Positions 15,011-46,647 of a DNA stretch of 64,000 nucleotides are shown piece by piece (positions within the stretch are counted from its first letter, which is position 1; every line of letters begins with the position of its first letter). Source of the stretch: Hypanus sabinus (taxonomy: Eukaryota); the NCBI RefSeq assembly GCF_030144855.1, contig NW_026779229.1:124001-188000 (forward strand). Direction: 5' to 3'. The notes beneath the pieces were generated by a model. That model made no database searches. It had not been told where the DNA came from and saw only the letters and a program-made list of their open reading frames with translations. Both the position numbers and the translations under genes were made by a program.

Positions 15011-15013
15011 ACA

Positions 15014-17519
15014 GGTATTTGTAAAGTAACAGTGATAGCGGGGTAACACACCGACGGGAGTAACGTAAATGGACCCATTAGTCCTGAAAGTCATCTGATT
15101 GATAAGGTTATTTTTTCCCAGTAAGTGAACACTAATCTGTTTGTGAAATAGGTTGCATTCGTTTGGACGTGATTATGTATAATTTGTAATCACCACATAG
15201 CTGCTGCCTTGCCCATCATTGTAATGGCCCCATTGTGGACAAATATTTAATATTGCTTTATAAAGTTGTTGACTCTGAGATCGGTGCTGCTCCAGGTTGC
15301 CGGGACACAGTTAAATCTGGCGAAAAGGAATGCCCAGTGTTCAAAAGATTATTCGAAAATAGTAACTTTTTACCAGAGTTCAAGTGGCCCGTCCTGCTGC
15401 TGTGTCTTTCCTATAAGCCCACAGCGATTTCTGCCCTCAGCTGTCACTAGTGTTTATAGTCTGACAGTCAATTGGTCCCAAAGTAAACAATAAATTAATG
15501 CGATGACACCACCAGATCTGAACCAGGATGCGGGTCGCGGTTGCTCCCTGAAGCTGATCAATTTGTCGTGAGATACTGTATGTAATCTTTGCCACCGTGG
15601 TTCAAAATTAAGCCCAGATCGAAGAGTACATCAGAACTATTGGCTGGAATGAGTTTTTGTGTGGTTTAGTTCCTGCGCGGTGGAGCAGGGTCTGGAGTTA
15701 GGTGCTGATGAGTGTGACGTCCAGGTTTATGTGTGTGTAGTCAACTGAACATTACTCTGATTGTGATCATTTACTGTTTGGTCCCACAGAATTCCGGTGT
15801 TCGGATTCGCTGGTAACAGAACCAGGAGCTCAGCACAGAGTAAACACACAGACTGTACTGGGTGGGCAACGTTACGGTGTGTTAATGCGCCGACTCGTGA
15901 CGGCAGGAATTCTAGTGTTTCTACCATTTCACCACTATCTTTAAAATTGTGTGGCTTTGCGGATTAGCCTGCTTTTTTTGCAGGAGTGAGTGTGCTATTC
16001 CAGCAAAGACAACAAGTATCTGTCAGTGATATTTAAAATAAAACTTTTTGAGTTTAAATCTCATTGGCTGTTGATAACAAATGTCTATGTGCACTGTATT
16101 GTGCTCCTCAGTTACCTAATACTGCGGCCATTGATTGTATGTCCGTGGTCTTCTACTGCCGTAGCCCGTCCAGTTCACTGTTCGACACGTTGCGTGTCCA
16201 GTGATGCCTCTCTGCACAGTGCAGTAGTTCGTGATTATTTGAGTTTCTGTCGTCTTCCTGACAGAATGAATCAAACCCGCCTTTCTCCACTAATCTCTCA
16301 TTAACAAAACGTTTTTGCTCCCAGAATTACCGCTACTTGATTTCTTTTTCCCAGCACCATGCTCCGCAAACTGATACTGTTGAACTTGGCAAACCCAAGA
16401 GTTCTGCAGTTCCTGCGATTTTCAAACTGCACCGTCTGGCACTAACAAACATTCCACTCTCAAAATCATCCAGATCACATTTCATCTCCAGGGGATGTTT
16501 GTTGGAGACAGAACGTACCCTGTACAGGATAGGCTGATAAGGATACCCTGATAAGGCTGTGAGTTTAGTTAATGATTATCACCAGGAGCTGACTGAACAT
16601 TAACCAGGGTGTGTTCATTTACTTACAGAACCCGTAACACAGCCTTACTGGGACAGGGTGGTAACAGAATCTGTACAAGGTTAGAAGCTCGATCTACTGA
16701 CATATAAACATTACAAAGGTACTTAGCCACTTTTGTGAACAGTTAAATGAGACTGAGAATGTATTGGGTTGTTCAATCATGCAGCTGTAGCGAATCGCTT
16801 TTGAAAGAATTAATAATTCCCTTCAGCTAATTGCATGCACCGACTTCCTGTGCATGTCCCGCGGGAAACCAGTGTTGTTGGAAATGTTTTAGAAAAAGCT
16901 GCATTTTCAACCCAGCTCCGAATCATCAGCAAAGGCTCGGGAGGTGCTTCCCGCATCTCGGAACTGTCCCCGGGCTACGGCTTGCAACAGCAGGAAGCCG
17001 GTCCGTCCACACTCGGGGATTTACTCATCCCCGACCGAGGGAACTGAGGATTCGCTTTGCTTATTCCTTCAATGGCGGAACCGACACTACCTGTCCACTC
17101 TTGACGACATTTCGTTAGGTAGCTACTGGGTGATAGCGAAATTATTAGAACTACGCGCACTGCATTTTATAGCGGGGGGGGGGGGCGTGTAAAGATGTGA
17201 TGGTTCCATTATAGAGTCATTGGTGAGACCTGTTGTGGATCATCGTCTTGTGTTGATTCCGTTGTGTCAGAAGTGTCTGGGTAGTTGAGAGATCTTTAAC
17301 AGGTTTAACAGAGAGAGATCTGCGCGTTGTGAGTTGTCCTGTGAAAAAACGTCTGTGATATTGGCTTTTTTTTCCAGTGATTGAGAAGGATTTCACATGA
17401 CCTAAATTTACAAAGTATCCTGTGGCGTCTTGACAGAGACGTGGACAAAATAGTTCCTGTTGTGGGAGGAACTGAAGGCAGTTGAAGACAGTTGAAAGCA
17501 GATTATTACAATTAGTTCT
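15014..17519 (+). repeat. ~2.9-kb tandem module, copy A (5' end cut by CR1)
   Basis: Collinear, high similarity to ~26390-29070. Confidence 0.9.
16090..16505 (-). mobile_element. Tc1/mariner transposase-derived relic inside module copy A
   Basis: Same sequence as 27490-27905, whose minus-strand ORF reads MEMKCDLSDFESGMFVCAR...LLGLSRSTVS (Tc1 N-terminal HTH). Confidence 0.8.
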
Positions 17520-17710
17520 GTAATCTCTGCTGTGTAATGTTCCTTGAAGGACAAGTGAGTGAGATGTTACTGGTGAGAGGCAAGATCAAGGCGCTGAGAT
17601 CACAGACAGACCGAGATCGGTCACAGTAAATTCAGCATGTGAACTTTATTAGATCTCCCAACAGCATTCTCTAGCTGGCAAAAATATATCTAGTGATTTT
17701 AATGTTAAAG

Positions 17711-20700
17711 GATGTGTCTAGTTAGGAGTGTTTCGAATGCCCTGTTGTGACTGCCTCTCTGACTACCCATGGCAGATCTTTCCGCGGACCAACTGGTCTA
17801 GGGGAAAACAAAAAACATCTCTGAGATCCTTGTACTTTCTTCTGATCACTTGTATTAACCATTTCAGCTGGGAATTTGTTCCATGTTTTACTGATTACCT
17901 TGCCTTACCAGTATCCAGTGTTTCAGTATAATAATACTATGTAAAGTAATGGAAGGCATTAAAGTAAATTGATATTTAAATTGCATATATATATATCTCA
18001 GTTAGAAGTAAGGCCTGTAAGTGGGCAGAAGAACCAGTTAACATGACTTGATAAAGTGCTGGGTTGGTCTGTAGTGTTAGGTTTTTTTTTATATTTAGCA
18101 AAATACTTTTCCCTTTGCAGGGCTCCTCTATTTTAGGGCCTTATCTTGTCCTTTTTTGTAACTGGCGGGAGGAACTAAGGAAAACTTTTTAAAACCACTA
18201 TTATAAAATGGGCAGCTCGTGGAGACTGTTTCGTTTTTTCTCTATGGGGATGCATTTCGACTTTTTTGTGCCGATTTTCGGGCTTTTTGGGGTGGTGGGA
18301 GGATTGGACTTAGTTTTGATTTACACGATTAATTGTAACATTAATTTTAGTTTTTTGGGGGGGATTTTTTTCCCATTACGGAGTTCCTGAACATGCGCAT
18401 TTTGTGTATGTTTGTACTTAGCAGCGCCAGATTTGATTAACCTGCGCTTGTGTGCTTCCATTTACGTGTTAAATAGAATAATTTTTATGGCAATTAAACA
18501 GATAAATGTTGTAAGTTGAAATGTACGTAGTTGGAATCATCTTATTAAGCGAAAAAAGACTTTTAAAATCATTAAGCCAATACAATTTTTGTTCAAGATT
18601 CGCATATCATAACGGGCGATCAAAATAGATTTTTTTCAAAAGTGGAAGGGCCTTCAATTTTACGCAACGTGTCAAAATAAAACAAAGGAAGTCTCTATTT
18701 TTATTCAATCTAATATTTTATTCATCCAAGAAGAGATTGTGTCAGATATTAATGGTAGATTTTTAATTGTTAAATGAACAATTTGCAATAGAAAAATTGT
18801 TCTGCTTAACCTATATGGACCTAATGTGGGTGATCCTTCTTTTAAAAAGAAAAATGTATTTATTTTATTGTCGGACTTAAATGAATATATGTTGTTAATG
18901 GGTGGTAATTTTAACTTTTGTTTAAACCTTTTGATTGACAAGAGTTCAACAAATCAGCGGCTTCCGAGTTGTTCTGCATCACTTATTAATATTTTTCTAA
19001 TTGATTTTGGCCTGGTTGAAATTTGGAGACATTTATATTCTAATGATCGAGATTATTATTTTTTTTCTCAGGTTCACAAAAAATATTCGATATTCGATTA
19101 CTTCATAGTTGATCACCGATTCTAGTCTAAAGTCCAGAAATGTGAATATGATGCTATAGTTCTTTCGGACCATGCTCCTTTAAGTTTAGCTTTTGAATTG
19201 AAAGATGCAGTTTTTGCAAATTTGCCTTGGCGTTTTCCATAAAATTGATTACGAAGTCCGGACTTTGTCAAATTTATTGAGACTCAGGTAAAAGATTTTT
19301 TTTTCTTTTAAGCAATACGGGAGATGTTTCAAAATTGCTTATATGGGATACATTTAAAGCATATCTGCGCTGTCAGATAATTTCCTATTCAGCTAAGCTT
19401 ACGAAACAGAAAAAAACAGAGTTAGATAAGATTTCCAAACAAATTAAAGACTTGGATAATATTTATGCAGTCTCTCCTAACATTGATTTATTTAAACAAA
19501 GAGTTGAACTCCAATTACAATATAATTTATTATTAACTTATCCTGTTGAAATAAATTTACTTAAATTGAAAAGTCAATTTTATGTGTTTTGACATATAAG
19601 TAACAATCTATTAGCATCTCAATTAAAAGCAGCTGGAGCTAAAAGAGAAATTTTAAAAATTCGTAATGAAGATGGTAGTTTAGTATGCAATTATGAAGAT
19701 ATTAATGAAAAAATTCCAAAACTTTTATATTGAACTTCATAAATCTCAGTTTCTAGTTGATTCTTCTAAAATGAATGCCGTTTTACAAAAGACTGAATTT
19801 CCTCAAATTTTTGCTGAGGATCAACAAACTCTTGATGCTCCTATTACTGAAAGGGAAATTTAGAAAGCGAGTTTTTCATTGCAATCTCGTTAAGCTCCTG
19901 GACTGGATGGGTATTCTGTAGGATTTTATAAATTTTGAATAATTGTTCTCTTCTTATATGTTGGAAACATTTAAAGATTATTTTTGATAGTAGAGTTACC
20001 TCACACATTTTATAAAGCTATTTCTTTAAGAATTAAAAAAGATAAAGATTATACTGACTGTGCTTCATATAGAGCTAGTTCATTATTAAATGTGGATGCT
20101 AAAATTCTCTCAAAAATAATGGCTAATCGGTTGGAAAATTTCTTTACTATCATTATTTCTCAAGATCAAATAGGTTTTATAAGGCTTAAATCTCCAGCAT
20201 CCGCAGATTTCCTCGTGTTTAGGTTTAATAAAGGGCCGTTATTCCTTTTCTAATGTCCGAAGATTTTTAAATGTTATATATTCATTCTTCTTTAAGGTTT
20301 CCCAATGTGTCGTGTCTCTTGATGCTGAAAAGGCATTTGATACAGTTGAATGGAGATACTTATTTAATGTTTTAGAGAAATTCGGCTTTGGTATTAATTT
20401 TAATAAGTGGATTGGAATGATATATAAAGCCCTATTGCTACTGTTATTACTAACATTTGCAGATCTACTTTTTTCGGCTTTCTTTGGGTATGAGACAAGG
20501 ATGTCCGTTGAATACTTTGTTATCTAATTTGGTGCTGGAACCCTTGGCTATTGCATCTCGTAAAGCTAAAGATATTCATGGAATTTTTATAAATGGGACT
20601 TCATAAGATCTCTTTTTATGCTGACGATCATTTAGTTTATATTTCGAATCATGAAGAACCTTATTGAAACTATTAAATGATTCTGGAACGTTTTCAGAAT

Positions 20701-22545
20701 ATAAACTAAACCTTCATAAAAGTGAATTATTTCCTCTAAATGATTATTCTTCTATATATGATGACATTCCTTTTAGAGTTACGGACTCATTTAAGTATTT
20801 TTTTACACTTTCGTTAGTCGGTCGAATTTATGCAGTTAAAATGATGATTTTACCAGAATTTTTATATGTATTTAAAAATATCCCTTTTTTAACTAAGAAG
20901 TTATACGATCAAGTTGATTCCATTATTTCAACTTTTGTTTGCAATAATACAAAAAAGAAGAATTGCTAAATAACATTTTCAAAAATTTAAAAAAATAGAT
21001 AAAGGTCTTGCTTTGCCTTATTTAAGAATGTATTATTGGGCTATTAATATACGTTATATGTGCTTTCGGTTATATGAGGCTGATAAAGATGAACGACCAC
21101 CTTGGACTGATTTGGAAATGAATGCTATGAAACAGTTTCATTTAACCTCATTATTAGGAAATTCTTTGTCTGTACAATTGGCCAAGATTACTAATTTAAA
21201 ATTTATATCCTAATAATATTGAATAAGCAGTCATTACAAATTTGGCTCCAGTTTCGTAATTTTTTAATCTTAAAAAAGCTAAACTTAGTTTAATTTATCG
21301 AAATTATTTAATTAAACCTTCATTAAGTGATCCTACTTCATTTTTGGTGTTTGTTCCTTTCACGGATTTCTTCCAAGATGGCTGACTGATGTCTGTTCAG
21401 AAATTAGTAACTAAATACTTTCTATCGTATTCACATTTCTTGCAATATCTTCAGGTCAGTCACTTCTTACAAAAATACAAAAGTAATTTTCCATATATAG
21501 AAGATTCTGACCTGTTAGATAACGTTTTTAAAATGAATCCTTTAGTTGAGGGTTTTACTGGGAAAATGTATAATTTATTGTTACAGCAACACAATTACCC
21601 TTCACTTACGATTAAGCAAGATTGGGAGAAAGAGCTTCACATGACCTTGATAACGGAAGATTGGTTGCGGACTTTGACGTTGGTTAACTCTTCTTCGGTT
21701 TGTGCCAGTCACTCCTTAATTCAATTTAAACTTGTATATAGTTACAATTTGACAAAGGAGAGACTGTCTAAAATGTTTCCTAATGTTGATAGTCAGGATT
21801 ACAGCCACATTGACACATAGATTTTGGTCGTGTTTTGTGTTGAAACATTTTTGGAAATCTATTTTCTCTGCAATTTCTAAAGCTTTAAAAATTAATTTAC
21901 AACCTAATAAATTGACAGTTTTATTTGGTACAATCCCTCAATATATACATGATATTTCTCCATTAGACCGACATGTAATTGCATTCGTTACATTATTGTC
22001 CAGAATGGCTATTTTGTTGAAATGGAAAGATACCTCTGCTCCTACTTTGATACAATGGTTTTCCCAGGTGATGTTATGTTTTAGTTTGGAAAAAAAATAG
22101 AAGTCGAACTTTTCATCCTCCATTCGATTTTGAGAAAAGGTGGGATTCATTCGCACACTACTATTATCTGATTTGAGTTAATTAATAAGGTTTCATTCCG
22201 ATTTTTCTTTAAGTGGATTTGACTTGGTGGAATTTTTTTTTAATGGAAGATTGTATGATGTACAGCTCCGGGGTGGGCTCCCAATGGGTTTTGCTTTTGG
22301 CTTTTTGGCTTTTTTTCAGTTGGTAGGGTTTTATTTTAGTTATCAGGGGTTCTTTCTTCCTTCTTTTTCTTTTTAAAAATATTCTTAACACTTTACTGTT
22401 CTTATTACTATTGATAAATTGCTTAGGTTTGTTAATCAGTTATTTCCTAATTTAATTCCTTGTTGCACATTATGAAATATTGACTTAATGTACCTTTTTT
22501 TTCAATCTTCAATAATAATGAGTAAACAGATTTTAAAAGGAAAAA
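17711..22545 (+). mobile_element. 5'-truncated, decayed L1-clade LINE (probable ORF1 tail, spacer, ORF2 from ~18487) with a 10-bp TSD AATGTTAAAG
   Basis: EN start MAIKQINVVS*NVRSWNHLIKRKK, LNLYGPN, GGNFN, SDH. RT motifs SLLNVDAKILSK, SLDAEKAFD, TRQGCPL-like, YADD. C-terminal THRFWSC. AATGTTAAAG occurs at 17701-17710 and 22546-22555. Confidence 0.92.
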
Positions 22546-23027
22546 AATGTTAAAGTGATTTTCAACACACAGTAAAGGGAATCAGCTCAGATACCGGTAA
22601 CGAATGTGTGAGGGCGTGGAAACACACCAACGGGAGGAAAGTAAACAGACCCATTAGTCAGAATTTTATCTGATTGATCAGTCTTCTTATTTCCAGTAAG
22701 TGAACACTAATTTGAACGCAAAATACATTCTTATCTTGTTGTACTCTTTAGGGCGTGGTTATCTCCAGATTCTAATGTTGACACAGCTGCTGCCTTGCCC
22801 ATTATTGGAATGGCCCCATAGTGGACAAATATTGAAATTTTCTTTATGAAAGGTCAATGTTCAAAAGAAAATATTATTACAAAATCATAACTTTTCACCG
22901 GAGTTGACAGTACCCATTCTGTTGCTGTGTTTTTCCAATAAAGCCGCAGTGGTCTTTGCCTCCAGCTGTCGCTACGGTTTATAGTCTGAAAATAAATTGA
23001 TCCCCATGCATACAATAAATTAATGCC

Positions 23028-23760
23028 AAACAAGAGGAAATCTGCAAATGCTGGAAATACAAGCAACAGACACAAAGCGCTGGAGGAACTCAACAGGCCA
23101 AGCAGCATCTCCGGAAAAGAGTACAGTCGAAGTTTCTGGCCAAGACCCGTCATCAGGACTGGAGAAAGAAAAAAGATGATATGTCAGAGCTAGAAGGAGG
23201 GGGAGGGGAGTACAGGAAGACGCGGAAAATGATAGGTGAAACCGGGAGGGGGAGGGATGAAGTAAAGTGCTGGCAAATTGATTGGTGAATGAGATACAGG
23301 GCTGGCGAAGTGGGAATCTGATAGGAGAAGACAGAAGGCCTGGAAAAAGAAAAGCAGCGAAGAGAACCCGAAAGAGACGATGGGCAGGCAAGTAGATAAG
23401 GCCAGACAGAGAAAGAGGAATGGGGAATGGTGAAGGGGGGCGGTATTACCTGAAGTCTGAGAAATCGATGTTCATGCTACCAGGTTATAGGCGAACCAGA
23501 CGTAATATAAAGTGTTGGTCCTCCAGTCTGAGTGTCGCTTCACCACAGCAGTGCGGAGACCAGGAATTGACATGTTGGAATGGGAATGGGAAGTGGAATT
23601 AAAATGGCTGGCCACTGGGAGATTTTTTTTCTGGGGGTCAAAGTGTCGGTGTTCCGCAAAGTGGTGCTGCCAAAGGGTCTCGGCCCAAAACGTCGACTGT
23701 CCTGTTTTCCATAGATGCTGCCTGGCCCGCTGAGTTCCTCCAGCATTCTGAGCCTGTTGC
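23028..23760 (-). mobile_element. Penelope-like element fragment (GIY-YIG C-terminus plus pseudo-LTR with a short inverted copy)
   Basis: Minus-strand HFAEH...LPVASHFNSTSHSHSNMSI is typical of PLE endonuclease ends. 23666-23760 is an inverted copy of 23060-23155. Imperfect TSD AATAAATTAATG / AATGAATTAGTG. Confidence 0.85.
23125..23160 (-). ncRNA. Minimal type I hammerhead ribozyme motif (PLE-associated), slightly degenerate
   Basis: Minus strand reads AGUC-CUGAUGA-C-GGGUCUUGGCCA-GAAA-CU-UC-GACU: intact CUGANGA and GAAA cores, stem I AGUC/GACU, stem II with one mismatch. Confidence 0.65.
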
Positions 23761-24039
23761 AATGAATTAGTGTGATGATACCAACTGAACGCAGCCGGGT
23801 TGCGGGTCGCGGTTGCTCCCTGGAGCAGATCGAGTTGTGGACAGATACTGGATGTAATCTGTGTCACCGTGCACTGAGGCACAATAGGAAGCCTGGACCG
23901 AGCAGCACAATAGAATAATTTGCTTGAATCAGCTTTTATAACAATATAACCATATAACAATTACACCAGAAACAGGCCATCTTGGCCCTTCTAGTCCGTC
24001 CCGAACGCTTACCCTCAGCTAGTCCCACCTACCGCACTC

Positions 24040-25410
24040 TGTGTATCTGTCTCTTTCTCTCTGTATCTCTCTCTCTCTTCGTATCTCCCTTTCTCTGTCT
24101 ATCTGTGTGTATGTGTTTGTGTGTGTGTGTATATATCTCTCCCNNNNNNNNNNNNNNNNNNNNNNNNNNNNNNNNNNNNNNNNNNNNNNNNNNNNNNNNN
24201 NNNNNNNNNNNNNNNNNNNNNNNNNNNNNNNNNNNNNNNNNNNNNNNNNNNNNNNNNNNNNNNNNNNNNNNNNNNNNNNNNNNNNNNNNNNNNNNNNNNN
24301 NNNNNNNNNNNNNCTCTGACAATAGACAATAGGTGCAGAAGTAGACAATTCGGCCCTTCGAGCCTGCACCGCCAATCTGCGATCATGGCTGATTAACTAC
24401 TATCAATACCCGGTTCCTGCCTTGTCCCCATGTCCCTTGATTCCACTATCCATAAGATACCTATCTAGCTCCTTCTTGAAACCATCCAGAGAATTGGCCT
24501 CCACTGCCTTCCGAGGCTAATCTATTGGAGTTTTTCGAGGATGTAACCAGGAAGTTTGATAAGGGAGATCCAGTGGATATAGTGTACCTCGATTTTCAGA
24601 AGGCATTTGATAAGGTCACACATAGGTGGGTAATATCAGAGCTCATGGCACTGGGGGGAAGATATTGACATGGATATAAAACTGGTTGACAGATAGAAAG
24701 CAAAGGGTAACGGTGAATGGGTGTTTCTCGGAATTGGCAGGTGGTGACTAGTGGGGGGCCACAGGGCTCGGCATTGGGACCACAGCTGTTTACGATTTAG
24801 ATCAATGATTTAGATGAAGACATTGAGAATAACATCAGCAAGTTTGCTAATGATACTAAGCTGGGTGGCAGTATGACACGTGATGTCAGGAGAATTCAGC
24901 GTGACTTGGATAGGCTGAGTGAGTGGGCAGATACTTGGCAGATGATGCTTAATGTGAATAAGTGTGAGGTTATCCACATTGGGAGTAAGAACAGTAAGGC
25001 AGATTATTATCTGAATGGTGTAGGGTTAGGTAAGGGAGAAATACAAAGAGATCTCGGTGTCTTGTTCATCAGTACCTCTCTCTCACTCTCTCTGTATCTC
25101 TCACACTCTGTGTCTCCCTCTCTCTGTGTATCTCTTTGTTGCATCCCTCTCTGTATCTNNNNNNNNNNNNNNNNNNNNNNNNNNNNNNNNNNNNNNNNNN
25201 NNNNNNNNNNNNNNNNNNNNNNNNNNNNNNNNNNNNNNNNNNNNNNNNNNNNNNNNNNNNNNNNNNNNNNNNNNNNNNNNNNNNNNNNNNNAGTCTGTGG
25301 GTTTCTGTCTGTATGCCTCTGTATGGTTGTTGTGTGTATTGTGTGTGATGTTTGTTTCTCTATGTCTGACTCGCTCTGCTTATTTTCTCTCTCCCTTCGT
25401 GCCTAATTAT
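24040..25410. repeat. CT/GT microsatellite tracts flanking two assembly gaps (24144-24313, 25159-25291)
   Basis: (TC)n/(TG)n-rich sequence adjacent to N runs. Confidence 0.9.
24317..25072. mobile_element. CR1 copy with internal inversion: minus-strand 3' end (24317-24515) fused to a plus-strand RT fragment (24516-25072)
   Basis: Both parts match the CR1 at 4400-6530 (equivalent to ~6330-6530 reversed and ~5270-5840 forward). Confidence 0.85.
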
Positions 25411-25734
25411 TGCTTTTTTTCAGAAGCGAGTAAATTCTATCCCTTACAAAAATATTCCCTCAATTTAGCTGCCATTGAGGAAAGTGCATTGAACTCCGAT
25501 TTCGTGACTTGCCTGAGCTTTCCCCTTCTCAAGCATAGGACCGACACTGTCTATTGACGAGTATAATAGCACATAGCAGGGTAGGTTGCAGTTCAAAGAA
25601 GGTTTAGGTGATTGATACTGGACCATTTGGGTTGTCCTGTGAGGCAACCTATGTGATCTTGGCTTGCTTTCATACATTTAGAACTTTTCCGCTTTGAAAT
25701 AGTTACATCACGTGGTGCTAGATGAATGAGGGGA

Positions 25735-25970
25735 GACTGGATTGTCGACATGTCATATTGTATATGCGGCAGATTATAGCACGGCAGATTGTAAACATGA
25801 CGGATTGTATACTTGATGGATTGTGTACAAGACAGATTGTGTCCATGACGGATAGCATACATAACACACTTTGTACATAACAGATTTTATGCATGACAGG
25901 TTGTTTACAGTACATGATGTATTTTGTAAATGACAGATTGTATACACGACAGACTGTATACATGACAGGT
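25735..25970 (+). repeat. Degenerate 16-bp minisatellite (consensus GACAGATTGTATACAT, ~14 copies)
   Basis: Units such as gacggattgtatactt, gacagattgtgtccat, gacagattgtatacac, gacagactgtatacat in register. Confidence 0.85.
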
Positions 25971-26176
25971 TCTATGTTGATGCACATTAAAAGAACCCAC
26001 TGAGTCTTTACAGGGATGCAGAGAAAATGGATCCTGTTCCAGTGGGGGCTGGGGCGTGGTCGGGACTCAAAATGGGCACCAACAGTTGAAGACTGATGAA
26101 ATGCATTTTGTTCCCTCGCCTCGAGTCTAGTACGTCATTTGAATGATGGTCCTCCACATTCAGAAAAAGAGACTTT

Positions 26177-29070
26177 GTAATCCTGCAGTGTAATGGCGCT
26201 TGATGCACACGTGTGTGAGATGTAACAGGATTGAGGCGCTGAGATCACAGACAGATCTGCGATGGTCACAGTGAATGCGGGATGTGAATGTAATTAAATC
26301 TCCCATCAGCATCCTCTGGCTGACAAAAACACATCCAGTGAATTTAAAATTAAAGGAGTTTTCATCATTCTGTAGGGAGAAACAGCTCTGGTATTTGTAA
26401 AGTAAAGATAAGAGGGGGGAAACACGCCGACCGGAGTAACGTAAATAGACCCATCAGTCATGAAAGTCATCTGATTGATAAGATTATTTATTTCCAGTAA
26501 ATGAACAATAATCAGAAGGTGAAATACATTATTATCTTGCTGTACTCTTTTGGACCTAGTTATCTCCAGTTGTAATCTCCACACATTTGCTGCCTCGCCC
26601 ATCATTGTAATGGCCCCGTTGTGGACAAATATTTCAGATTGCTTTATAAAGTTGTTGACTCTGAGATCAGTGTTGCTTCAGGCTGCCGTGGCACAGTTAA
26701 ATCTGGCGAAAAGGAATGTCCAGTGTTCAAAAGAAAAGTTTGGTCCAAAATCCTAACTTTTTACCAGAGTTCACATGGCCCATCCTGCTACTGTGTCTTT
26801 CCTATAAGCCCACAACGATTTCTGTCCTCAGCTGTCACTGGAGTTTATAGTCTGACAGTAAATTGGTCCCAAAGTAAACAATCAATTAATGCTATAACAC
26901 CAGCCGATCTGAACCAGGATGCGGGTTGCGGTTGCTTCCTGGAGCAGATGGATTTGTCGTGAGTTACTGTATGTAATGTTTGTCACCGTCTACAGAGGTA
27001 CAAAATTAAGCCTGGATCGAATAGCACATCAGAACCATTGGCTCGAATGACTTTTTGTTTTGCTTAGTTATTGCGCGGTGGAGCAGGGTCTGGAGTTACG
27101 TGCTGATGAGTGTGACGTCCAGGTTTATCTGTGTGTTGTCAACTAAATATTGTCCAGAGTGTGTTCACTTACTGTTCGGGCCAACAGAATTCCGGTGCTC
27201 GGATTCGCTGGAAATAGAACCAGGAGCTCAGCACAGAGTAAACACAGAGACTGTACTGGGTGGGCGACGTTGCGATGTGTTAATACGCCCCCTTGTGACG
27301 GCAGGAATTCTAGTGTTTCTACCACTTCATTACTGTCTGTCAAACCGTGTGGATTTGCGGATCCGCCTGATTTTTTTCTGCAGGAGTGAGTGTGCTATTT
27401 TAGTAAAGAGTGCAAGTGTCAGTCAGTGATATTTAAAATAAAACTTGCTGAATTAAATCTCATTGGCTGTTAATAACAAATCTCTATAGGCACTGTATTG
27501 CGTTCCTCCTGTACCTGATAATGCGGCCACTGATTATATGTCCATGGTCTTCTACTGCCGTAGCCCCTCCAGTTCAATATTCGACACGTTTCGCGTCCAG
27601 TGATACCTCTCTGCACAGTGCAGTAGTAACGTGATTATTTGAGTTACTGTCGTCTTCCTGGCCGATTGAATCAGTCCGCCTTTAACCACTGATCTCTCTC
27701 ATCACCAAGAAGATTTTTCTCTCTCAGTATTGCCGCTACCTGATTTTTTTCCCAGCACCATTCTCCGCAAAACTGAGACTGTTGAACGGGACAATCCCAG
27801 GAGTTCAGCAGTTCCTGCGAAATTCAAACTGCACACTCTGGCACAGACAAACATTCCACTCTCAAAATCACTGAGATCACATTTCATCTCCATGGTGATG
27901 TTTGTTGGAGACAGAACGTACCCTGTACAGGATAGGGACAGACCCGCTGATAAAGCTGTGAGTTTAGTTAATGATTATCAGCAGGAGCTGACTGAACATT
28001 AACCAGGGTGTGTCCATTACTTACAGAACCCGTAACACAGCCTCACTGAGACAGGGTGGTAACAGAACCTGGAGCCGCGGTACAAGGTAAGAAGCTCTAT
28101 ATACTGACATATAAACATCACAAAGGTAGTTCGCCACTTTTATGAACACGAATATGATTTATAACGTATTGTGTTGATCGACATTAGAACTGTAGCGGAT
28201 CGCTTTTAAATGAATTAATAATTCCCTTCAGCTAATTGAATGCATCGACTTCCTGTGCATGTCCCGCGGGAAACCGGTGTAGTTGGCGGTGTTATCGGAA
28301 ACGCCGCACTTTCAACCCGGCTCCGAATCATCAGCAAAGGGTCGGGAGGTGCGAGCTTCCCGCATCTCGGAACTGTCCCCGGGCTACTGCTTGCAACAGC
28401 AGGAAGCCGATCCGTCCACACTCGGGGCTTTACCGATCCCCGACTGATGGAACCGAGGATTCGCTTTGTTTATTCCTTCACTGGCGGGATCGACACTATC
28501 TGTCCATCCTAGACGGCATTTCAGTTGGTGATGAAAAGTATTTAACCACCCACATTGGAGATTACATCCGGGGCGGGGAGTGGTCGTGGGGAAAGTCGGT
28601 GTAAGGAGTTGATGGTTGCATTATATAGTCGGTTGGTGAGACCTGTTGTGGATCACCGTCTGTAATATTGTTTCCCTTCTGTCAGATGTGAGTGGGCAGG
28701 TGGGAAATGAAAAGAAGTTTTACCAGACAGATATCTGCCCCTGCGAGATTTTCTATGAGGAAAATGTTATATCTTGACTTGTGGTGTGACATAAAACAGG
28801 GCAGAACTGCTTGTATACATAACTGTTATTTTCAATAACAATATACTTGATTGTATCCGCGGTAATTTGGTAAAATGAATGGAAACTTCGATGAGACATA
28901 AAGTATCCCACGGAGTCTGACAGGGACGTGGACAAAATAGTACCTGTTGTGTGAGGATACCGTCAGTTGAAGACGGTTGAGATGTTATTTCTCTCTCTCT
29001 CTGAGTCCAGTGTGTCATGGGAATGACCGGCCTCAATATTCAGCAGAATGAGAGTCTTTCAGTTAATATT
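26177..29070 (+). repeat. Tandem module copy C (complete, 2894-bp period)
   Basis: GTAATCCTGCAGTGT recurs at 26177 and 29071. Contains the Tc1 relic (27490-27905) and a GC-rich block (28230-28530). Confidence 0.92.
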
Positions 29071-30214
29071 GTAATCCTGCAGTGTGGTGGCCCTTGATAC
29101 ACAAATGAGTGAGATGTTACAGGTGAGAGGCAGGATTGATGAGCCGAGATCACAGTCAGATCTGCATTGGTCACAGTGAATGCGGGATGCCAATGTAATT
29201 AAATCTCCCATCAGCAACTTCTGGCTGACAAAAACACATATCAGTGGGCACTGTACTGTGCACGTCCCGTACCTAATACTGCGGTCACTGATTGCATGTC
29301 TGTGGTTTTCTACATCTGTAGCCCGTCCATTTCAATGTTCGACATGTTACACGTCCAATGACGCCTCTCTGCTCAATGCATTTGCAGCGTTGTTATTTGA
29401 GTTACTGTCGACTTCCCGGCAGATTGAACAAATTTCGCTTTTCCCATTCGATCTCTCTCATTAACAAGGCGTGTTCGCTCTCAGAACTGCCGCTCACTGA
29501 TCTTCTTCCGCGCCATTCTCCGCAAAACTGAGACTGTTGAACGGGACAATCCCAGGAGTTCAGCAGTTCCTGCGAAATTCAAACTGCTCCCTCTGGCACA
29601 GACAAACATTCCACTCTCAAAATCACTGAGATCACATTTCATCTCCAGGGGATGTTTGTTGGAGACAGAACGTACCCTGTGCTAAGGAACAGGACGTGGA
29701 GAGAAACGCTGATAAGGCTGTGGGTGTAGTTAATGATTATCACCAGGAGCTGACTGAACATTAACCAGGGTGTGTTCATTACTTACAGAACCCGTAAAAC
29801 AACCTCACTGGGACAGGGTGGTAACAGAACCTGGAGCCGCTGTACATGGTAAGAAGCTCTTTTTACTGAAATATAAACATTGCAAAGGCAGTCGTCCACT
29901 GAAATGAGACTGAGAACTTATTAAGTTGTTCAACAATTGAACTGTAGCGAATAGCTGTTGAAAGAATTAATAATTCCCTTCTGCTAATTGAATGCATCAA
30001 CTTCCTGTGCATGTCCCACGGGAAACCGGTGTAGTTGGAGGTGTTATCGGAAACGCCGCAACTTTCAACCCAGCTCCGAATCATCAGCAAAGGGTCGGGA
30101 GGTGCGAGCTTCCCGCATCTCGGAACTGTCCCCGGGCTACTGCTTGCAACAGCAGGAAGCTGATCCGTCCACACTCGGGGATTTACCGATCTCTGACTGG
30201 GCGAACTGAGGATT
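29071..30214 (+). repeat. Tandem module copy D with a ~1.15-kb internal deletion ending at the Tc1 left end
   Basis: Jumps from acacatatcagtg directly to ggcactgtact (Tc1 start) at ~29245 and then follows copy C until the CT tract. Confidence 0.88.
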
Positions 30215-30683
30215 CCCCTCCCTACCCCCACTCTCCCTCTCCCCTCTCTCCCATCTCTCTCCCCTTCTCTCTCCCCCTCTCTTCCCCCTCTCTCTCTACA
30301 CTTTCTCTCCCACACATTTTCTCACCCCTCAGCCCCTGTCCCTCTCTCCCCCCTCTCGCCTCCCCTCTCCCCTTCTCTCTCCCCTCTCTCACTCCTCTCT
30401 CACCTCTCACCCCTTTCTCACCTCTCACTCCTCTCTCTCATCTCTCACCCCTCTCTCCCTAAACCCCCTCTCTCTCCCCTCTCCCTCCCCTTCTCTCTCC
30501 CCTCTCTCTCTCCCCTCTCTCCCCCACTCCTCCCCTCTCTTTTCTCCTCTCTCTCCCCTCTCCCCGTCTCCCCCTTTCTCTGTCCCCTCTCTGCCCCTCT
30601 CTCTTCCCCTCTCTCTCCCCTCTCTCCCCCCGTCTCTCCCAACCTTCTCTCTCTCTCTCCCACCCCTCTCTCTCACCCCCTCT
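30215..30683 (+). repeat. ~470-bp polypyrimidine (C/T) low-complexity tract
   Basis: Almost exclusively C/T. Confidence 0.95.
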
Positions 30684-30930
30684 CAGTGGGTCTCTATTTG
30701 CGTTACTTCCGTTGATGTGTTTCCTTGGTATCATACACACTTTACAACTATCTCAGATGATACTCTTTACCGTGTGATGAAAATCCCTCGAACACTAAAT
30801 TCACTGAATGTGTTCTGTCAGCTTGAGGATGCTGATGGGAGATTTAATAAAATTCACATGCTGAATTTACTGTGACCGACCTATTCTGTGATCTCGGCGC
30901 CTTAATCCTGCTTCTCACCTGTAACATCAC
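30684..30930 (-). repeat. Inverted fragment (E) of the tandem module
   Basis: Reverse complement matches 17560-17710 plus 22556-22657 and 26215-26457. Confidence 0.85.
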
Positions 30931-33900
30931 ATGTACCCCCAGATCCTTCTGCTCCTCTACACTGCCAAGTGTCCTGCCACTTACTTTGTACTCTGCCTTG
31001 GAGTTTGCCCTTCCAAATTGTATCACCTCACACTTCTCCGGGTTGAACTCCATCTGCCAATTTTCAGCCCACATCTGCATCCTATCTATGTCTCTCTGCA
31101 ATCTTCGACAATCCTCTACACTATCTACAACACCACCAACATCTGTGCCATCTGCAATCCAACCCACCCTTCTACCCCCATATCCAGGTTGTTAATAAAA
31201 AAAATCATGAAAAGTAGAGGTCCCAGATCAGAACCTTGTGGGACACCACTAGTCACAACCCTTCAATCTGAATGTAATCCCTCCACCACGACCTTCTGCC
31301 TTCTGCGGGCAAGCCAATTCTGAATCCACCTGGTCAAACTTCCCTGGATCCCATGCCTTCTGACTTTCGGAATAAGCCTACTGTGTGGAACCTTGTCAAA
31401 TGCCTTACTAAAATCCATGTAGTTCACATCCACTGCACTACTATTTTCTATATGCCTGGTCACATCCTCAAAGAAATCTAACAGGCTTGTTAGAAACGAT
31501 CTGCCCTTCACAAAGCCATGCTGACGTCCCTGATCAGACCATGATTCTCTGGTAATCCTATATCTAAGAATCATTTCCAACAGCTTTCCCACCACAGACG
31601 TCAGGCTCACTGGTCTATAATTACCCGAACTATCCATACTAACTTTTTTGAACAAGGGGACAACATTCGCCTCCCTCCAATCCTCCGGTACCATTCCCGT
31701 GGACAACAAGGATATAAAGATCCTAGCCAGATGCTCAGCAATTTCTTCCCTCGCTTCATGGAGCAACCTGGGGAATATTCCTTCAGGCACTGGGGTCTTA
31801 TCCATTCCTAATTTATTTTAACAACTCCAACACCACCTCTCTCCTAATATCAACATGCTCCAGGACATCAACCTCACTCATGTTGTTCTCACCGTCATCA
31901 AGTTCCATCTCATTGGTGAATACCGAAGAGAAGTATTCATTAAGGACCTCGCTCACTTCCACAGCATCCAGGCACGTCTATCCACATTTATCCCTAATCG
32001 GTCCTACCTTCACTCCTCTAATCCTTTTGTTCTTCAGATAATTGAAGAATGCCTTGGGGTTTTTTCTTACCCTACTCGCCAAGGCCTTCTAGTGCCCCTT
32101 TCGTGCTCTTCTTAGCCCCTTCTTAAGCTACTTTCCTGCTACCTTATATTCCTCAATTGACCCATCTGATCCTTGCTTCCTAAACCTCATGTATGCTGCT
32201 TTCTTCCACCTGACTAGATTTTCCACCTAACTTTTCACCCATGGTTCCTTCACCCTACAAATCTTTATTTTCCTCACTGGGAAAAAATAATCCCTAACAT
32301 CCTGCAAAAGATTCTTAAACATCGACCACATGTCCATAGTACATTTCCCTGCAAAAACATCATCCCAGTTCACACCCGCAAGTTCGAGCCTTATAGCCTC
32401 ATAATTTGCCCTTCCGAATTAAACACTTTCCTATGCTCTCTGAGTCTATCCTTTTCCCTGATAATTCTAAAGACCAAGGAGCAATGATCACTGTCCCCAA
32501 GATGCTCACCCACTGAGAGATCTGTGACCTGACCCGGTTCGTTACCTAATACCAGATCTAGTATGGCATTCCCCCTAGTCGGACTGTCAACAGACTGTGA
32601 CAGGAATCCGCCTTGGACACATTTAACAAACTCTGTCCCATCTAAACCCTTGGAACTAATCAAGTGCCAATCAATATTAGGGAAGTTAAAGTCACCCATG
32701 ATAACAACCCTGTTAGTTTTGCACCTCTCCAAAATCTACCTCCCAATCTGCTCCTTGATGTCTCTGCTGCTACCGGGGGCCTAAAGAATACCTTCAGTAG
32801 AGTAACTGCTCCCTTCCTGTTCCTGACTTCCACCCATACTGACTGAAAAGAGGATCCTGCTACATTACCCACCCTTTCTATACCTGTAATAGTATCCCTC
32901 ACCAGTAATGCCAAAACTCCACCCCCCCCCCCATCCCTTTTAAAGCACTGAATTCCAGGAATATTGAGAATCCATTCCTGCCTGGGTGCCAGCCAGGTCT
33001 CTGTATGGGCACTACATCATAATTTCATGTATGTATTCAAGCTCTCAGTTCATCACCTTTGTTCCTGAGGCTTCTTGTTTTGAAGTACACACACTTTAGC
33101 TCTTCTACCTTACTACCTTTATACCCTTTATTCTGCTGCTCTTTCCTCAAAGCCTCTCTATATTTTAGATCTGGCTTTACTCCATGCACTTCTTTCACTA
33201 CTCTATCGCTCCGGGTCCCACCCCCCTTGCAAATTATTTTAAACCCTCCCGAACCATGCTAGCAAACCTACCAGCAAGGATATTGCTCCCCCGCGAGTTC
33301 AGGTGCATCCCATCCAATCTGTACAGGTCCCACCTTCCCCAGAAGAGATCCCAATGATCCAAAAATCTAAAACCTTGCCCCCCGCACCAACTCCTCAGCC
33401 ACGCATTCAATTGCCATCTCCTCCAATTCTTACCACCACTATCCCGTAGCACTGGAAGCAACCCTCTTCTCTGTCCCATCCTTCTGCACCACAGGATCAG
33501 ACTCAGTGCCAGAGGCCCTGCCACCATGGCTCACACCTCGTCAGTCGTCCCCGCCAACAGTATCCAGGACGGTAAACTTATTATTCAGGAGAATGTTTAC
33601 AGGAGAGCACTGCATTAACTGTCCACTTAACTTCGCTTTCCCCCCTCGGACTGTCACCCAACGATCTGTTTCCAGCAGCCTAGGTGTGACTACCTCCCTG
33701 TAGCTCTCATCTATGACTGTCTCATTCTCCCTTATGAGTCGAAGGTCGTCCAGCTGCTGCTCCAGATTCCTCACACAGTTTTCCAGATCGCCCAGCCGCA
33801 TGCACTTCTGGCAGATGTGACTGCGGGAGAGGGGAGTTCCCCTAAGACTGCCACATCTCACAGGAGAGGCACATCACCAACTCAGGAGTCATTGTAAAGA

Positions 33901-34020: not shown

Positions 34021-34029
34021 TGCTTATTA

Positions 34030-39419: not shown

Positions 39420-40660
39420 ATCCTGCTACTAATTCAATATGCCAGCAACAACCTCCGACAAATAAGAGACCCCGTGAATTTAATGTTTCGAGTGTTTCCA
39501 TTACTCATTGATGGAAAACAGTTGATGTATCTGTAAACTAAATGCGATGTCAGGCAAAATCACCCGCAGGAAATGGTCTAAATTTCATATGATGGCGCTG
39601 TGATCCTGCAATTTGTTTCCAGTAAGTGAACAATAAACTGAAGGAGAAGAGCATTCATATCGTGCTGTCGGCTTTGACAGGTTGTCATCTCTGGGAGATG
39701 GTAATCTTGGTACAGCCGCTCCCCAATAACCCATTGCCCAAAGTTTACAACTGCGGGCAACTCTTAAAGATGGCTTTTAAATGTACCAACTTAAAATCAG
39801 TGCAGATGCAGGCTAAGGGGGCACAGCTAAATCTGGAGAAACGGAATGTCCGCTGGTCAAAAAAGAACATTATTCCAAATGTATAATATTCCATCAGAGT
39901 TGAGAGCGCCCTTCCTTCTGCTGTCTCTGCAATAAACCTACAGCGATCTTTGCCCTGAGCTGTCGCTGGAGTTTATAAACTGAAAAAAAAACTGGTCCCG
40001 AGGTGAATAATAAATCCAAGCGACGGCACCAACCGAACGGAACCAGGATGCGGGTTATGATTCCTCTCTGGAGGTGGTAAAATTTTGTGCACTGAATTAT
40101 TAATTCTGGTTTGGAACACAAGTTAGAAAATCTCTTTGAAGCAAGGTGAGTTTGTCTGGGTTAACGCAAGCTTTGTGGAACAATGTGTGGCGTTACATGC
40201 TGAATACGGAAAAGTTCAGGTTTATGAGCGTGTTATCAACTGAACATTGTTCAGGGTGTGTTCACTTGTTGTTAGGGGCATAAAATGCAGAAGCTTGGAT
40301 TCCCTGAAACCAAACCCAGGAGTTCTGCATCAGGTAGGAACATTGACTGTATTCGGCAGTGTTACGGTGTTTTAATAGACCCACTTGTAACGGCAGCATT
40401 TCTAATATTTCTACCATATCAATGTTATCATTGAAATCGCGCGGCTTTACGGATCTGTGTGTTTTATTATTCTGTACGTGTATTTTTTAGGACAGACAGG
40501 GTAGATCTGTCAGTGATATTTATATTAACAAATATTGTGGTAATTCTCAGAGGCCTATATAAAAATAACAAATTCTACCCTCAGTGGGCACTTTACTATA
40601 TACCTCCCGTACCTAGTAATGTGCCCACTGAGTGCATGTCCGGGGGCTTCTGCAGCTGTT
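39420..40660 (+). repeat. Diverged tandem module copy F
   Basis: Shares TTTCCAGTAAGTGAAC, GCACAG(C/T)TAAATCTGG, GAACCAGGATGCGGG, CTGTCAGTGATATTT and the Tc1 left end, in the same order as copies A and C. Confidence 0.8.
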
Positions 40661-41885
40661 CCCCGTCCGATTCAATGCTCTCCACTGCGCTACCGTCCGC
40701 TTCAGTGCTGACCACTACCCTACCGTCTGCTTCAATGCTGACCACTGTGCTACCGTCCGCTTCAATGCTGACTACTACCCTACCGTCAGCTTCAATGCTG
40801 ATCACTGCGCTACCGTCCACTTCATTGCTGACCACTGCACTACCGTCCGCTTCAATGCTGACCAGTGCGCAACCGTCCGCTTCAATGCTGATCACTGCAC
40901 TACGGTCCGTTTCAATACTGACCACTACACTACCGTCCGCTTCAATGCTGACCACTGCACTACAGTCCGCTTCAATACTGACCACTACACTACCGTCCGC
41001 TTCAATGCTGACCACTACACTACCGTGCGCTTCAATGCTGACCACTGCACTACAGTCCGCTTCAATACTGACCACTACACTACCGTCCGCTTCAATGCTG
41101 ACCACTACACTACCGTCCGCTTCAATGCTGACCACTGCACTACAGTCCGCTTCAATACTGACCACTACACTACCGTCCGCTTCAATGCTGACCACTACAC
41201 TACCGTCCGCTCAATGCCCACCACTGTGCTACCGTCCGCTTCAATACTGACCACTACACTACCATTCACTTCACTGCTGACCAATACGGTACCGTCCGCT
41301 TCAATGCTGACCACTACACTACCATTCACTTCACTGCTGACCAATACGGTACCGTCCGCTTCAATGTTGACCACTGCGCTACCGTCCGGTTCAATACTGA
41401 GCACTACACTACCGTCCGCTTCAATGTTGACCACTGTTTTACCGTCCGCTTCAATGCTGACCACTACACTACCGTCCGCTTCAATGCTGACCACTACACT
41501 ACCATTCACTTCACTGCTGACCAATACGGTACCGTCCGGTTCAATGTTGACCACTGCGCTACCGTCCGGTTCAATACTGAGCACGACACTACTGTCCGCT
41601 TCAATGTTGACCACTGTTTTACCGTCCGCTTCAATGCTGACCACTACACTACCGTCCGCTTCAATGCTGACCACTACACTACCATTCACTTCACTGCTGA
41701 CCAATACGGTACCGTCCGCTTCAATGTTGACCACTGCGCTACCGTCCGGTTCAATACTGAGCACTACACTACCGTCCGCTTCAATGTTGACCACTGTTTT
41801 ACCGTCCGCTTCAATGCTGACCACTACACTACCGTCCGCTTCAATGCTGACCACTGTTTTACCGTCCACTTCAATGCTGACCACC
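40661..41885 (+). repeat. 30-bp minisatellite (consensus ACCACTACACTACCGTCCGCTTCAATGCTG, ~40 units) with 90-bp and 180-bp higher-order periodicity
   Basis: Units visible in register; a 1-nt deletion near 41210 shifts the phase. Confidence 0.97.
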
Positions 41886-42369
41886 GGGCTACTGCACCAC
41901 CAGATTTATCAACCTCAGCTTGTTTGATTTAGTAGAATTAGAGGTAAAATGACTTTACCCTCGGGTATTGGATGAATGGGGGCATCTGACAGCATTCGCT
42001 GGTATTAGAAAATCACGGGAGTTGATTTTAGTCACTGTTATTTCGATGGTGAGGAGATTTTACAAATGCATATATTTCAAATGAATTGAGCCCTTGCTGG
42101 ATACATTGAGTATCAAGCGGAGTCCAGGCAGGAATGTGGAGAACAGTTTTGCTGCTGTAGGGATAGCTGAAACTGGAGAAGATACATGAGGCTATTGCCA
42201 GGAGGTGGAAATTCTGTGTGTTTGGCATTCTCGTCCTTAAAGGGAAAGAGAAACAGAGTTTTTTTTTATCTGTTTAATTCCGCAGAACACAGATTCTCTA
42301 CAAACAAGGGAGCGACGTGTTGTGTCGCTGTGATCATAGAGAATGTCGGAACAGGACTGATGGGACAAA

Positions 42370-42700
42370 TGACCTGTTACTAATTCAACACTCTAACAAA
42401 TAAGAGACCCAGTGAATTTAATCTTTGGTGCTTTTGCATCGTTCTCTGACGAGGAGCGATACAACTATGTGTAAAGTAAATAGGATGCCAGGCAAATTCA
42501 CCAGCAGGAAATGATAATAATTTCATATGATTGCTGCTGTGATGTGGTAATTTGTTTCCAGTAAGTGAGCAATAATCTGAAGGAGAAGGGCGTCCTTATC
42601 TTGCTATCAATTTGTCAACTTTGACTGGTTGTCATCTGTGGGGGGGGGGGGGTGCGGGGTATCTCGGCACAGTTGGGGTAAGTGGAGAGAGAGACTGTCA
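42370..42700 (+). repeat. Diverged partial module copy G; candidate first exon/promoter of the NLR gene
   Basis: Collinear with 39420-39700, with a donor-like CCA|GTAAGT at 42561, 1.5 kb upstream of the first NLR-associated acceptor. Confidence 0.7.

Positions 42701-46613: not shown

Positions 46614-46647
<34 letters not shown>

Follow-up and report, generated by a model that had tools for sequence, protein, structure and literature searches.

A 2.9-kb module repeated in tandem upstream of an NLR gene in the stingray Hypanus sabinus is probably (a likelihood of roughly 60%) a non-coding, multi-exon 5′ leader unit of an NLR family that was amplified at this locus long ago and has since decayed. 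Pieces of this module are spliced, as 5′ exons, to NLR exons in three Hemitrygon akajei RefSeq models, P0035, P0085, and P0008, and the junctions of the H. akajei models fall on GT/AG sites that are kept in copies A and C. These observations sustain the proposal of a preliminary description that the module is the duplicated 5′ end of the NLR transcription unit, but do not favor the mode of use suggested there.

Tandem copies of the module

The copies were mapped across the window (the whole 64-kb stretch of H. sabinus DNA analyzed here) by nhmmer, with unit C (26083–29060) as the query. The search recovered all seven of the copies that had been described, A to G, at the expected places (Table 1), and six of the seven lie on the plus strand upstream of the NLR exons, that is, in the NLR orientation, the one exception being E, as described previously. 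Among the window copies, only C keeps all splice sites. The period of ~2.9 kb is kept even in old copies, the F–G spacing being 2938 bp, and the donor-like site of G is located 1541 bp upstream of 44102, in line with the distance of ~1.5 kb reported for the last copy.

The array is old and decayed, and most of the copies are damaged, with LINE insertions, deletions, and one inversion, such that one or more splice sites are lost in most copies. Copy B is split by a 4.8-kb LINE (17718–22545) that has an A-tail and is flanked by a target duplication of 10 bp (AATGTTAAAG), and is also interrupted by an inverted-repeat element (23063–23760); two assembly gaps (24144–24313 and 25159–25291), both next to CT/TG simple repeats, bracket an 845-bp LINE island within this copy, and its distal half is missing or could be hidden in these gaps. 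Copy D lacks the motif region, which corrects the earlier description, and copy E adjoins a 3′-truncated minus-strand LINE with EN, RT, and ORF1-like parts (~30.9–33.9 kb). In copy F, a 30-bp minisatellite (40663–41884, 40.8 copies) replaces the distal part, and the tail of this copy corresponds to C 28871–29118. Copy G is followed by a high-copy repeat ending near 42860.

Table 1. Module copies, their exon-like pieces (e1–e4), and the exons of the downstream NLR gene in the window.
Feature	Position	Strand	Remarks
Copy A	15012–17498	+	nhmmer; 5′-truncated, adjoins LINE RT fragment
Copy A, e1-like sequence	contains motif at 15115–15128	+	
Copy A, e2	15503–15577	+	followed by /GTATGT
Copy A, e3	16629–16679	+	9-nt deletion; donor GTTAGA
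Copy A, e4	16827–17114	+	CAG acceptor intact
Copy B	17517–26040, in pieces: 17517–17717, 22546–23043, 23507–23938, tail 25874–26040	+	nhmmer
Copy B, e2	donor at 23850	+	donor broken, GGATGT
Copy C	26083–29060	+	nhmmer; sole complete unit
Copy C, motif	26491–26504	+	GTAAAT variant
Copy C, e2	26894–26968	+	followed by /GTATGT; ATG lost
Copy C, e3 (mini-exon)	28027–28086	+	flanks CAG/ and /GTAAGA
Copy C, e4 (CpG-rich block)	28232–28523	+	flanks CAG/ and /GTTGGT
Tc1-like fragment in copy C	~27272–27917	−	HTH_23 and Sigma70_r4, weak (E 0.03–0.07)
Copy D	29068–29239 and 29241–30219	+	nhmmer; internal loss of C 26334–27483 (e1/e2 region)
Copy D, e3	29789–29848	+	intact
Copy D, e4	29984–30214	+	acceptor mutated, AG to TG; ended by CT-rich repeat 30214–30684
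Copy E	30687–30918	−	inverted 230-bp fragment, = C 26215–26453
Copy F	39430–42321: 39430–40767 and tail 42077–42321	+	nhmmer; diverged
Copy F, e1	39572–39773	+	open in P0035 frame apart from the TAA of the motif
Copy F, e2 equivalent	40023	+	no donor
Copy G	42270–42672	+	nhmmer; proximal partial unit, ~400 bp, = C 26173–26554
Copy G, e1	ATG-equivalent 42511; motif 42555–42568	+	second donor-like GTAAGT at 42678
NLR gene, 5′ part	44102–55622	+	
NLR 5′UTR exon	44102–44270	+	
NLR ATG exon	45675–45769	+	ATG at 45760
Further NLR exons	47824–48105, 49904–50070, 55280–55451, ~55549–55622	+	

Module exons in NLR gene models

Homology marks the downstream gene as a probable NLR, given that its N-terminal exons share 85–92% identity with H. 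akajei proteins in which NACHT, NOD2_WH, NLRC4_HD2, and LRR_6 domains follow. The spliced protein was searched exon by exon; the peptide of exon 47824–48105 matches P0001/P0002 at 85–87%, and P0024 shares the N-terminus and runs into NACHT. No Walker A motif or NACHT was found within the 64-kb window; given that the NACHT exon of a paralogue is located ~20 kb after the ATG, the corresponding exon here would fall beyond 64000. Two death-fold-like exons gave no match in Pfam or PDB, so they are called CARD-like by eye only.

Module exons are seen in three of the 87 models of the family, a count based on protein data, where UTRs are invisible, and these H. akajei models are presumably RNA-based; P0085, P0035, and P0008 are named “uncharacterized protein” in RefSeq and lie on contigs of 9.4, 7.0, and 5.6 Mb, respectively. 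In P0085, residues 1–25 match e2 of copies A and C (15503–15577 and 26894–26968), residues 26–123 match e4 of A, C, and D (from 16827, 28232, and 29984 onward; 79% identity, E 4e-30), and the junction between the two (D-T/L-I-E) falls exactly on ACT/GTATGT and CAG/CTAATT of copies A and C; beyond these pieces, the model runs on through the ATG exon and exon 5 to NACHT. In P0008, the 60-nt piece with the flanks TTACTTACAG/ and /GTAAGA is present twice in series; the first 17 residues of this model resemble e4 (28291–28338) at noise level only (score 31). P0035 starts in a G/F-like exon, with residues 1–47 matching G 42511–42642 (62%) and residues 10–70 matching F, and its gene span is 13,191 bp, against a distance of 13,115 bp in the window, measured from G through exon 6. 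Copy G thus occupies the conserved place of a first exon that is annotated as an alternative one.

The best alternative, which we nevertheless consider unlikely, is that the array is pure debris, with intergenic DNA having undergone neutral duplication in tandem and the Hemitrygon “exons” being ab initio artefacts that chain ORF-like repeat pieces. The state of the array fits such an origin: apart from the insertions, deletions, and inversion, no module ORF has stayed unbroken in the window, and the copies drift uniformly, from ~15% divergence between A and C (84.5% identity over 2.4 kb) to 36% between C and F (64% identity), the A–C identity staying level at ~85% and not clearly raised at e1 or e2. 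A word search with the e4 ORF matched no other protein. Rfam and tRNA scans of the window gave no matches. Contigs of a related species diverged by ~5%, aligned over positions 42250–48249, likewise show little or no RNA on G, the depth being 0 and 10.7 in two runs vs 603 and 112 on exon 44102. Against pure debris, however, different module pieces are used in three independent models, the junctions of which are on canonical sites conserved across genera and between 15%-diverged copies, the span of P0035 matches the position of G within 0.6%, and P0008 retains an intron and looks transcript-derived. The suggestion that the module might be only debris of unequal crossing-over is nevertheless partly right, the array being old and most of its copies damaged.

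The donor-like motif

The motif TT(T/C)CCAGTAA(G/A)TGA is present exactly where it was first noted, with 5 occurrences vs 0.15 expected (15115, 22690, 26491 [GTAAAT], 39616, and 42555), and the presence of ETS-like motifs was likewise verified, at 30705 (minus strand), 39567, and 42505. The five occurrences of the motif are copies by descent rather than independent events. In the strict version of the leader model, each copy would consist of a promoter and a first exon that ends in TTTCCA/GTAAGT and is spliced to 44102, the acceptor shared by all copies, as in UGT1 or protocadherins. The retention of GTAAGT, a good donor by consensus, in 4 of the 5 copies, the ETS-like motifs just upstream, and the H. 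sabinus paralogue model P0009, in which an upstream exon does splice into a 44102-type acceptor, all speak for this arrangement. We consider it highly improbable all the same, given that P0035 reads through the supposed donor as exon (CFQSVSN) and that the motif block, with 17 of 20 positions invariant, is one of seven equally conserved 20-nt blocks in 1.4 kb, with the A–C identity at the motif below average. Furthermore, no joint from 42561 to 44102 was found among the relative’s RNA contigs over 42250–48249, the upstream exon of P0009 is unmatched in the module, and both e3 and e4 carry acceptors. Like that of P0009, the upstream coding pieces of P0005, P0007, and P0014 have no match in the window, and the mini-exon e3 is not significantly similar to either the ATG exon or exon 44102.

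Relationship to transposable elements

As reported previously, the module has no recognizable TE coding sequence apart from the embedded Tc1-like fragment, the Pfam search of its ORFs being blank outside weak HTH matches, and no TIRs, LTRs, or target duplications were found for the whole unit; the module thus has neither terminal repeats nor TE-type coding capacity. The embedded element described as Tc1 is not confirmed by Pfam or PDB, although the fragment has weak HTH matches (E 0.03–0.07) and an LSDFxxGxxVGAR-type motif that we take to be Tc1-type. This fragment has two other copies in the window; the sister copy gave no Pfam or PDB match, and no TIR was found for the fragment. The LINE RT fragments beside A, E, and F were considered as a part of the module and rejected because their distances to it differ (~337 vs 50 bp) and E abuts the truncated 3′ side of its LINE.

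In the DNA of the related species, G-like sequence is present at ~35–50x single-copy depth and the NLR 5′ exons at ~25–78x, and in one contig, G-like sequence is continuous with DNA from immediately upstream of the ATG exon. The least credible of the explanations sees in the module a dispersed composite transposon that has no tie to NLR loci and was amplified here by chance. The multiplicity of G-like sequence, the Tc1-like fragment with its other copies, and the adjoining LINE fragments could be turned to such a view; against it stand the lack of TE hallmarks, the differing LINE distances, a copy number matching that of the NLR exons rather than that of the neighboring repeats (500–2000x), and the absence of a pile-up of loose ends at G among the relative’s contigs, in contrast to 42857 and 46691. 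Because its pieces are annotated as spliced NLR 5′ exons in three H. akajei models, the module appears to be a duplicated gene front-end, not a transposon.

A model of the proposed leader array and comparison with known systems

Under the leader-unit interpretation, the 2.9-kb module would serve a large NLR family of elasmobranchs as its 5′ leader unit, and unequal crossing-over would have amplified the units in tandem upstream of the H. sabinus NLR long ago, with later decay through LINE insertions, deletions, inversion, and minisatellite growth. Each unit would contribute four exon-like pieces, namely, e1 with the motif, e2, the 60-nt AG/GT-flanked mini-exon e3, and the CpG-rich e4, which has the highest CpG content of the array (observed/expected ~1.0–1.1) and is better conserved between A, C, and D than any other block. 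Transcripts starting within or before a unit would then run from e2 through e4 to the ATG exon, or from e1 to the first coding exon, yielding alternative 5′ leaders, and may also take up e3 of successive units serially. Because e3 and e4 have acceptors, the units would be chained rather than mutually exclusive. We infer that some copy in the window may still be used; the location of the array 14–29 kb upstream and the full LINE in between count against the leader-unit interpretation. It is a long shot that each intact unit has a CpG/ETS-type promoter of its own, at which the CpG-rich e4 and the ETS-like motifs hint, and that the unit that fires, or the number of e3/e4 pieces in the chain, sets the 5′UTR of NLR members.

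Similarly to UGT1A and the clustered protocadherins, the array consists of tandem paralogous 5′ units in the gene orientation upstream of shared exons, and in P0035, an exon of the e1 type is annotated in the role of an alternative first exon, with splicing to an exon further downstream. The analogy, which was drawn in the preliminary description, is not supported at the acceptors: in the UGT1/protocadherin arrangement, the units have a donor without an acceptor, so that a single one is joined to the constant part, whereas two of the module exons, e3 (TTACTTACAG/) and e4 (CCCTTCAG/), carry acceptors, P0085 joins e2 to e4, and P0008 uses module exons serially. Moreover, the stingray units are non-coding and decayed, and the targets in the stingray models differ (ATG exon, exon 3).

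The exon 1 series of NR3C1, in which multiple untranslated alternative first exons are spliced to a common coding exon, is similar in that the leaders are non-coding, some are located in CpG-rich DNA, and only the 5′UTR is altered; the stingray units differ in being clear 2.9-kb tandem duplicates that also include internal cassette exons. Expanded fish NLR genes have repeated N-terminal exons, and the array shares with them a lineage-expanded family with serially duplicated 5′ exons: the stingray models P0003/P0005 have repeated peptide exons, and P0015 contains six copies of the ATG-exon homologue, so that serial tandem 5′ exons are found elsewhere in the family. Unlike the short coding exon repeats of fish NLRs, however, a whole multi-exon non-coding unit with its introns is amplified here. 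An expansion of NLRs is on record for zebrafish (Howe et al. 2016, as cited in PMC8455134). In its ~2.9-kb period, partial terminal unit, and age-graded divergence, the array resembles a macrosatellite or a segmental tandem duplication produced by unequal crossing-over, but its content is gene-derived, consisting of leader exons of the adjacent gene family, and not anonymous. Our literature search found nothing on tandem leader exons of NLRs.

In genome annotation, there is a risk that module exons are mistaken for coding N-termini, P0035, P0085, and P0008 being cases in point, and arrays of this kind should be kept out of transposon masking. An unused array would be a tandem duplication of the ordinary kind, in decay. 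The regulation of lineage-expanded vertebrate NLR families is poorly understood and, if the cassettes are used, the expansion of the NLR family would have taken a modular 5′ leader with it and multiplied this leader locally, which would open a way to study how promoters and UTRs vary among the NLRs of elasmobranchs. Should unit choice indeed set the 5′UTR, it would in turn determine the translation or the tissue pattern of single genes within this many-copy NLR family, a non-coding counterpart, in innate immunity, of protocadherin promoter choice.

Layout and age of the array

The array upstream of the NLR gene is best read, from its sequence, as a tandemly amplified cassette of leader exons of the NLR family. 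Self-comparison and an nhmmer search with unit C as the query confirmed the tandem array of direct repeats (period, about 2.9 kb) that the preliminary description had proposed. Ungapped identity is 84.5% between copies A and C, 64% between C and F, and 65% between F and G, with an F-G BLAST core at 76%. The minisatellite in F has a 30-bp period (40.8 copies, 83% matches) and is rich in CpG (o/e 1.0-1.2). Neither termini nor domains of transposable elements were found for the unit as a whole.

Features of the array and the NLR gene (window positions)
Feature	Position	Strand	State
Copy A	15012-17498	+	e2 donor and e4 acceptor kept; e3 damaged
Copy B	17517-17717, 22546-23043, 23507-23938, tail 25874-26040	+	e2 donor lost (GGATGT); distal half not seen in assembled sequence
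Copy C	26083-29060	+	sole complete unit; e2 donor, e3 acceptor and donor, e4 acceptor and weak GTTGGT donor all kept
Copy D	29068-30219	+	equivalent of C 26334-27483 lost; without e1 and e2; e4 acceptor TG
Copy E	30918-30687	inverted	230-bp fragment
Copy F	39430-40767	+	distal part replaced by minisatellite; e1 present; without e2 donor, e3 and e4
Tail of F unit	42077-42321	+	equals C 28871-29118
Copy G	42270-42672	+	first ~400 bp of unit; e1 only
e1	G 42511-42642; F 39599-39781		
e2	A 15503-15577; C 26894-26968; B 23775-23849		
e3	C 28027-28086; D 29789-29848; A 16629-16679		9-nt deletion in A
e4	A 16827-17114; C 28232-28523; D 29984-30214		
Minisatellite	40663-41884		in place of F distal half
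NLR exons	44102-44270, 45675-45769 (ATG 45760), 47824-48105, 49904-50070, 55280-55451, ~55549-55622	+	read from sequence

The Jukes-Cantor distance is 0.17 for A-C and 0.49 for C-F, compared with only about 0.05 for orthologous single-copy contigs of a related species, so that even the youngest duplication is several-fold older than that species split, with no homogenisation; the later damage to the copies likewise indicates an old array. Copy B is interrupted by a 4.8-kb LINE, which has an A-rich tail and a target duplication of 10 bp, AATGTTAAAG; copy C shows this site in its single, unduplicated form. Another element in B (23063-23760), inserted between the e1 and e2 regions, has 97-nt inverted arms that are 78% complementary and 504 nt apart. 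Both N runs adjoin CT/TG simple-sequence tracts and enclose an 845-bp island (24314-25158), a piece of LINE in which the junction at 24517 is oddly palindromic; compared with 5271-6527, its initial 200 bp (24318-24517) run opposite to the rest, possibly an assembly artefact. The distal half of B, the expected site of e3 and e4, may be deleted or concealed in the gaps. A near full-length minus-strand LINE (30850-33900; endonuclease 32394-32735, RT 31266-31817, ORF1-like 33544-33873) is truncated at its 3' end at the junction with inverted copy E.

Module pieces match annotated exons in Hemitrygon akajei

A tblastn comparison of 87 family proteins with the window showed that module sequence encodes the N-termini of three H. 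akajei RefSeq models, P0085 (pieces e2 and e4), P0008 (e3) and P0035 (e1). Residues 1-25 of P0085, which contains NACHT, match e2 and residues 26-123 match e4 (79% identity, E 4e-30), and the junction between D-T and L-I-E falls exactly at ACT/GTATGT and CCCTTCAG/CTAATT in copies A and C. Twelve residues later the model changes frame and passes through the ATG exon (45677-45769, score 98), followed by exon 5, exon 6 and NACHT. P0008 carries the 60-nt e3, preceded by TTACTTACAG and followed by GTAAGA, twice in succession in different frames, directly before its ATG-exon homologue. The N-terminus of P0035 is MMIIPYDCYSDVVTCFQSVSNKLKEKG; residues 1-47 match copy G (62%) and residues 10-70 copy F, beyond which the model continues in frame into the counterpart of exon 47824. 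The P0035 gene spans 13,191 bp, and the corresponding stretch of the window, 42511 through exon 6, measures 13,115 bp, so that G occupies the conserved place of the annotated first exon of P0035.

No intact ORF was found among e1-e4 in the window, nor any Pfam domain in these pieces, which are best read as putative non-coding leader exons that annotation sometimes translates. The e4 piece is the CpG-richest segment within the array (o/e 1.0-1.1) and, at 93% column identity, is conserved better than any other block among A, C and D.

These matches support the proposal that the module is a duplicated NLR 5' end, but not the donor named with it, TTTCCA/GTAAGT. A motif search of the window found TT(T/C)CCAGTAA(G/A)TGA exactly where proposed, including copy G (donor at 42561), and the reported ETS-like motifs are present. 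However, P0035 reads through the motif as exon, with CAG-TCN-GTG for CAG-TAA-GTG. Nor does conservation single it out: with 17 of 20 positions invariant in the A-C-F alignment, it is one of seven blocks at 16-18/20 in 1.4 kb, and A and C are less alike around it (65-77% identity) than on average. The RNA contigs of the relative, from small runs of another species, list no 42561>44102 joint, which is weak evidence against this donor. Copy G also bears another GTAAGT, at 42678. In H. sabinus the motif could nevertheless function as a donor.

Copy number and RNA in a related species

In whole-genome contigs from a species about 5% diverged, G-like sequence occurs at 35-50x single-copy depth (13 contigs over 42551), similar to the NLR 5' exons (25-78x) and far under the neighbouring true repeats (about 500 to >2000x at 42650-42860, 44250-44450, 46650-46850 and 48050-48250). 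Repeat boundaries are sharp, with loose ends, at 42857/42864 and 46691, and one high-copy stretch takes in the donor of exon 44102-44270 together with the 3' end of that exon. One DNA contig joins G-like sequence (up to 42447) to DNA at 45141, shortly before the ATG exon. RNA depth in two runs was 0 and 10.7 at 42450-42649, and 603 and 112 at 44050-44249. RNA run X16 of a species about 5% diverged includes a 359-nt contig that matches a 68-nt stretch from the start of G (42328-42395) with zero mismatches and holds, about 225 nt away, a second copy with 6 mismatches; the remainder of G is absent from this run.

The downstream gene

Part of the exon chain is supported by RNA contigs of a relative: X21 joins 44264 to 45674, and a loose end in X16 behind 48105 is identical to the opening 30 bases of exon 49904-50070. 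Neither NACHT nor a Walker A motif was found in the 64-kb window. Used alone as the query, the peptide of exon 47824-48105 matches H. akajei proteins at 85-87%; P0001 has NOD2_WH, NLRC4_HD2 and LRR_6 domains, and NACHT was found in P0003 and P0024. In the paralogue P0002, a NACHT-LRR gene begins 20 kb past the ATG, a position that here falls just beyond 64000. From these matches and the P0002 layout, we infer that the downstream gene belongs to a large NLR family of elasmobranchs (73 matches over rays and sharks). NLR expansions are recurrent in jawed vertebrates (PMC8455134).

The segment 63402-63641 (+) matches the C-terminal 80 residues of P0002, a 317-aa model that stops short of NACHT, at 92.5%; it is a possible alternative last exon, yielding a NACHT-less N-terminal isoform. 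In divergent orientation to the NLR gene lies an intact, single-exon galactosyltransferase gene (B3GALT-like, 10433-11590, minus strand; Pfam Galactosyl_T, E 4e-40), the ORF of which (10433-11587, minus strand) is matched exactly by a product of assembly GCA_030144855.1; no other gene is called there within 10 kb.

Comparison with known arrangements

The preliminary description likened the array to the UGT1 and protocadherin clusters. The first exons of those clusters lack acceptors and are mutually exclusive, whereas the stingray e3 and e4 are internal, with acceptors, and P0008 chains two e3 copies, so the logic differs. Closer are genes with multiple untranslated exon 1s, combined with a family habit of serial 5' exon duplication. 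P0003 and P0005 contain repeated peptide exons. In the H. akajei RefSeq model P0015 the homologue of the ATG exon (45675-45769) is repeated serially about six times in frame (DHHQQVELSCT...RFGMDT repeats), which indicates that tandem 5' exon amplification recurs in this NLR family. The stingray array is a fresh example of an already known type of arrangement, and would gain interest if its units turn out to be independent promoters.
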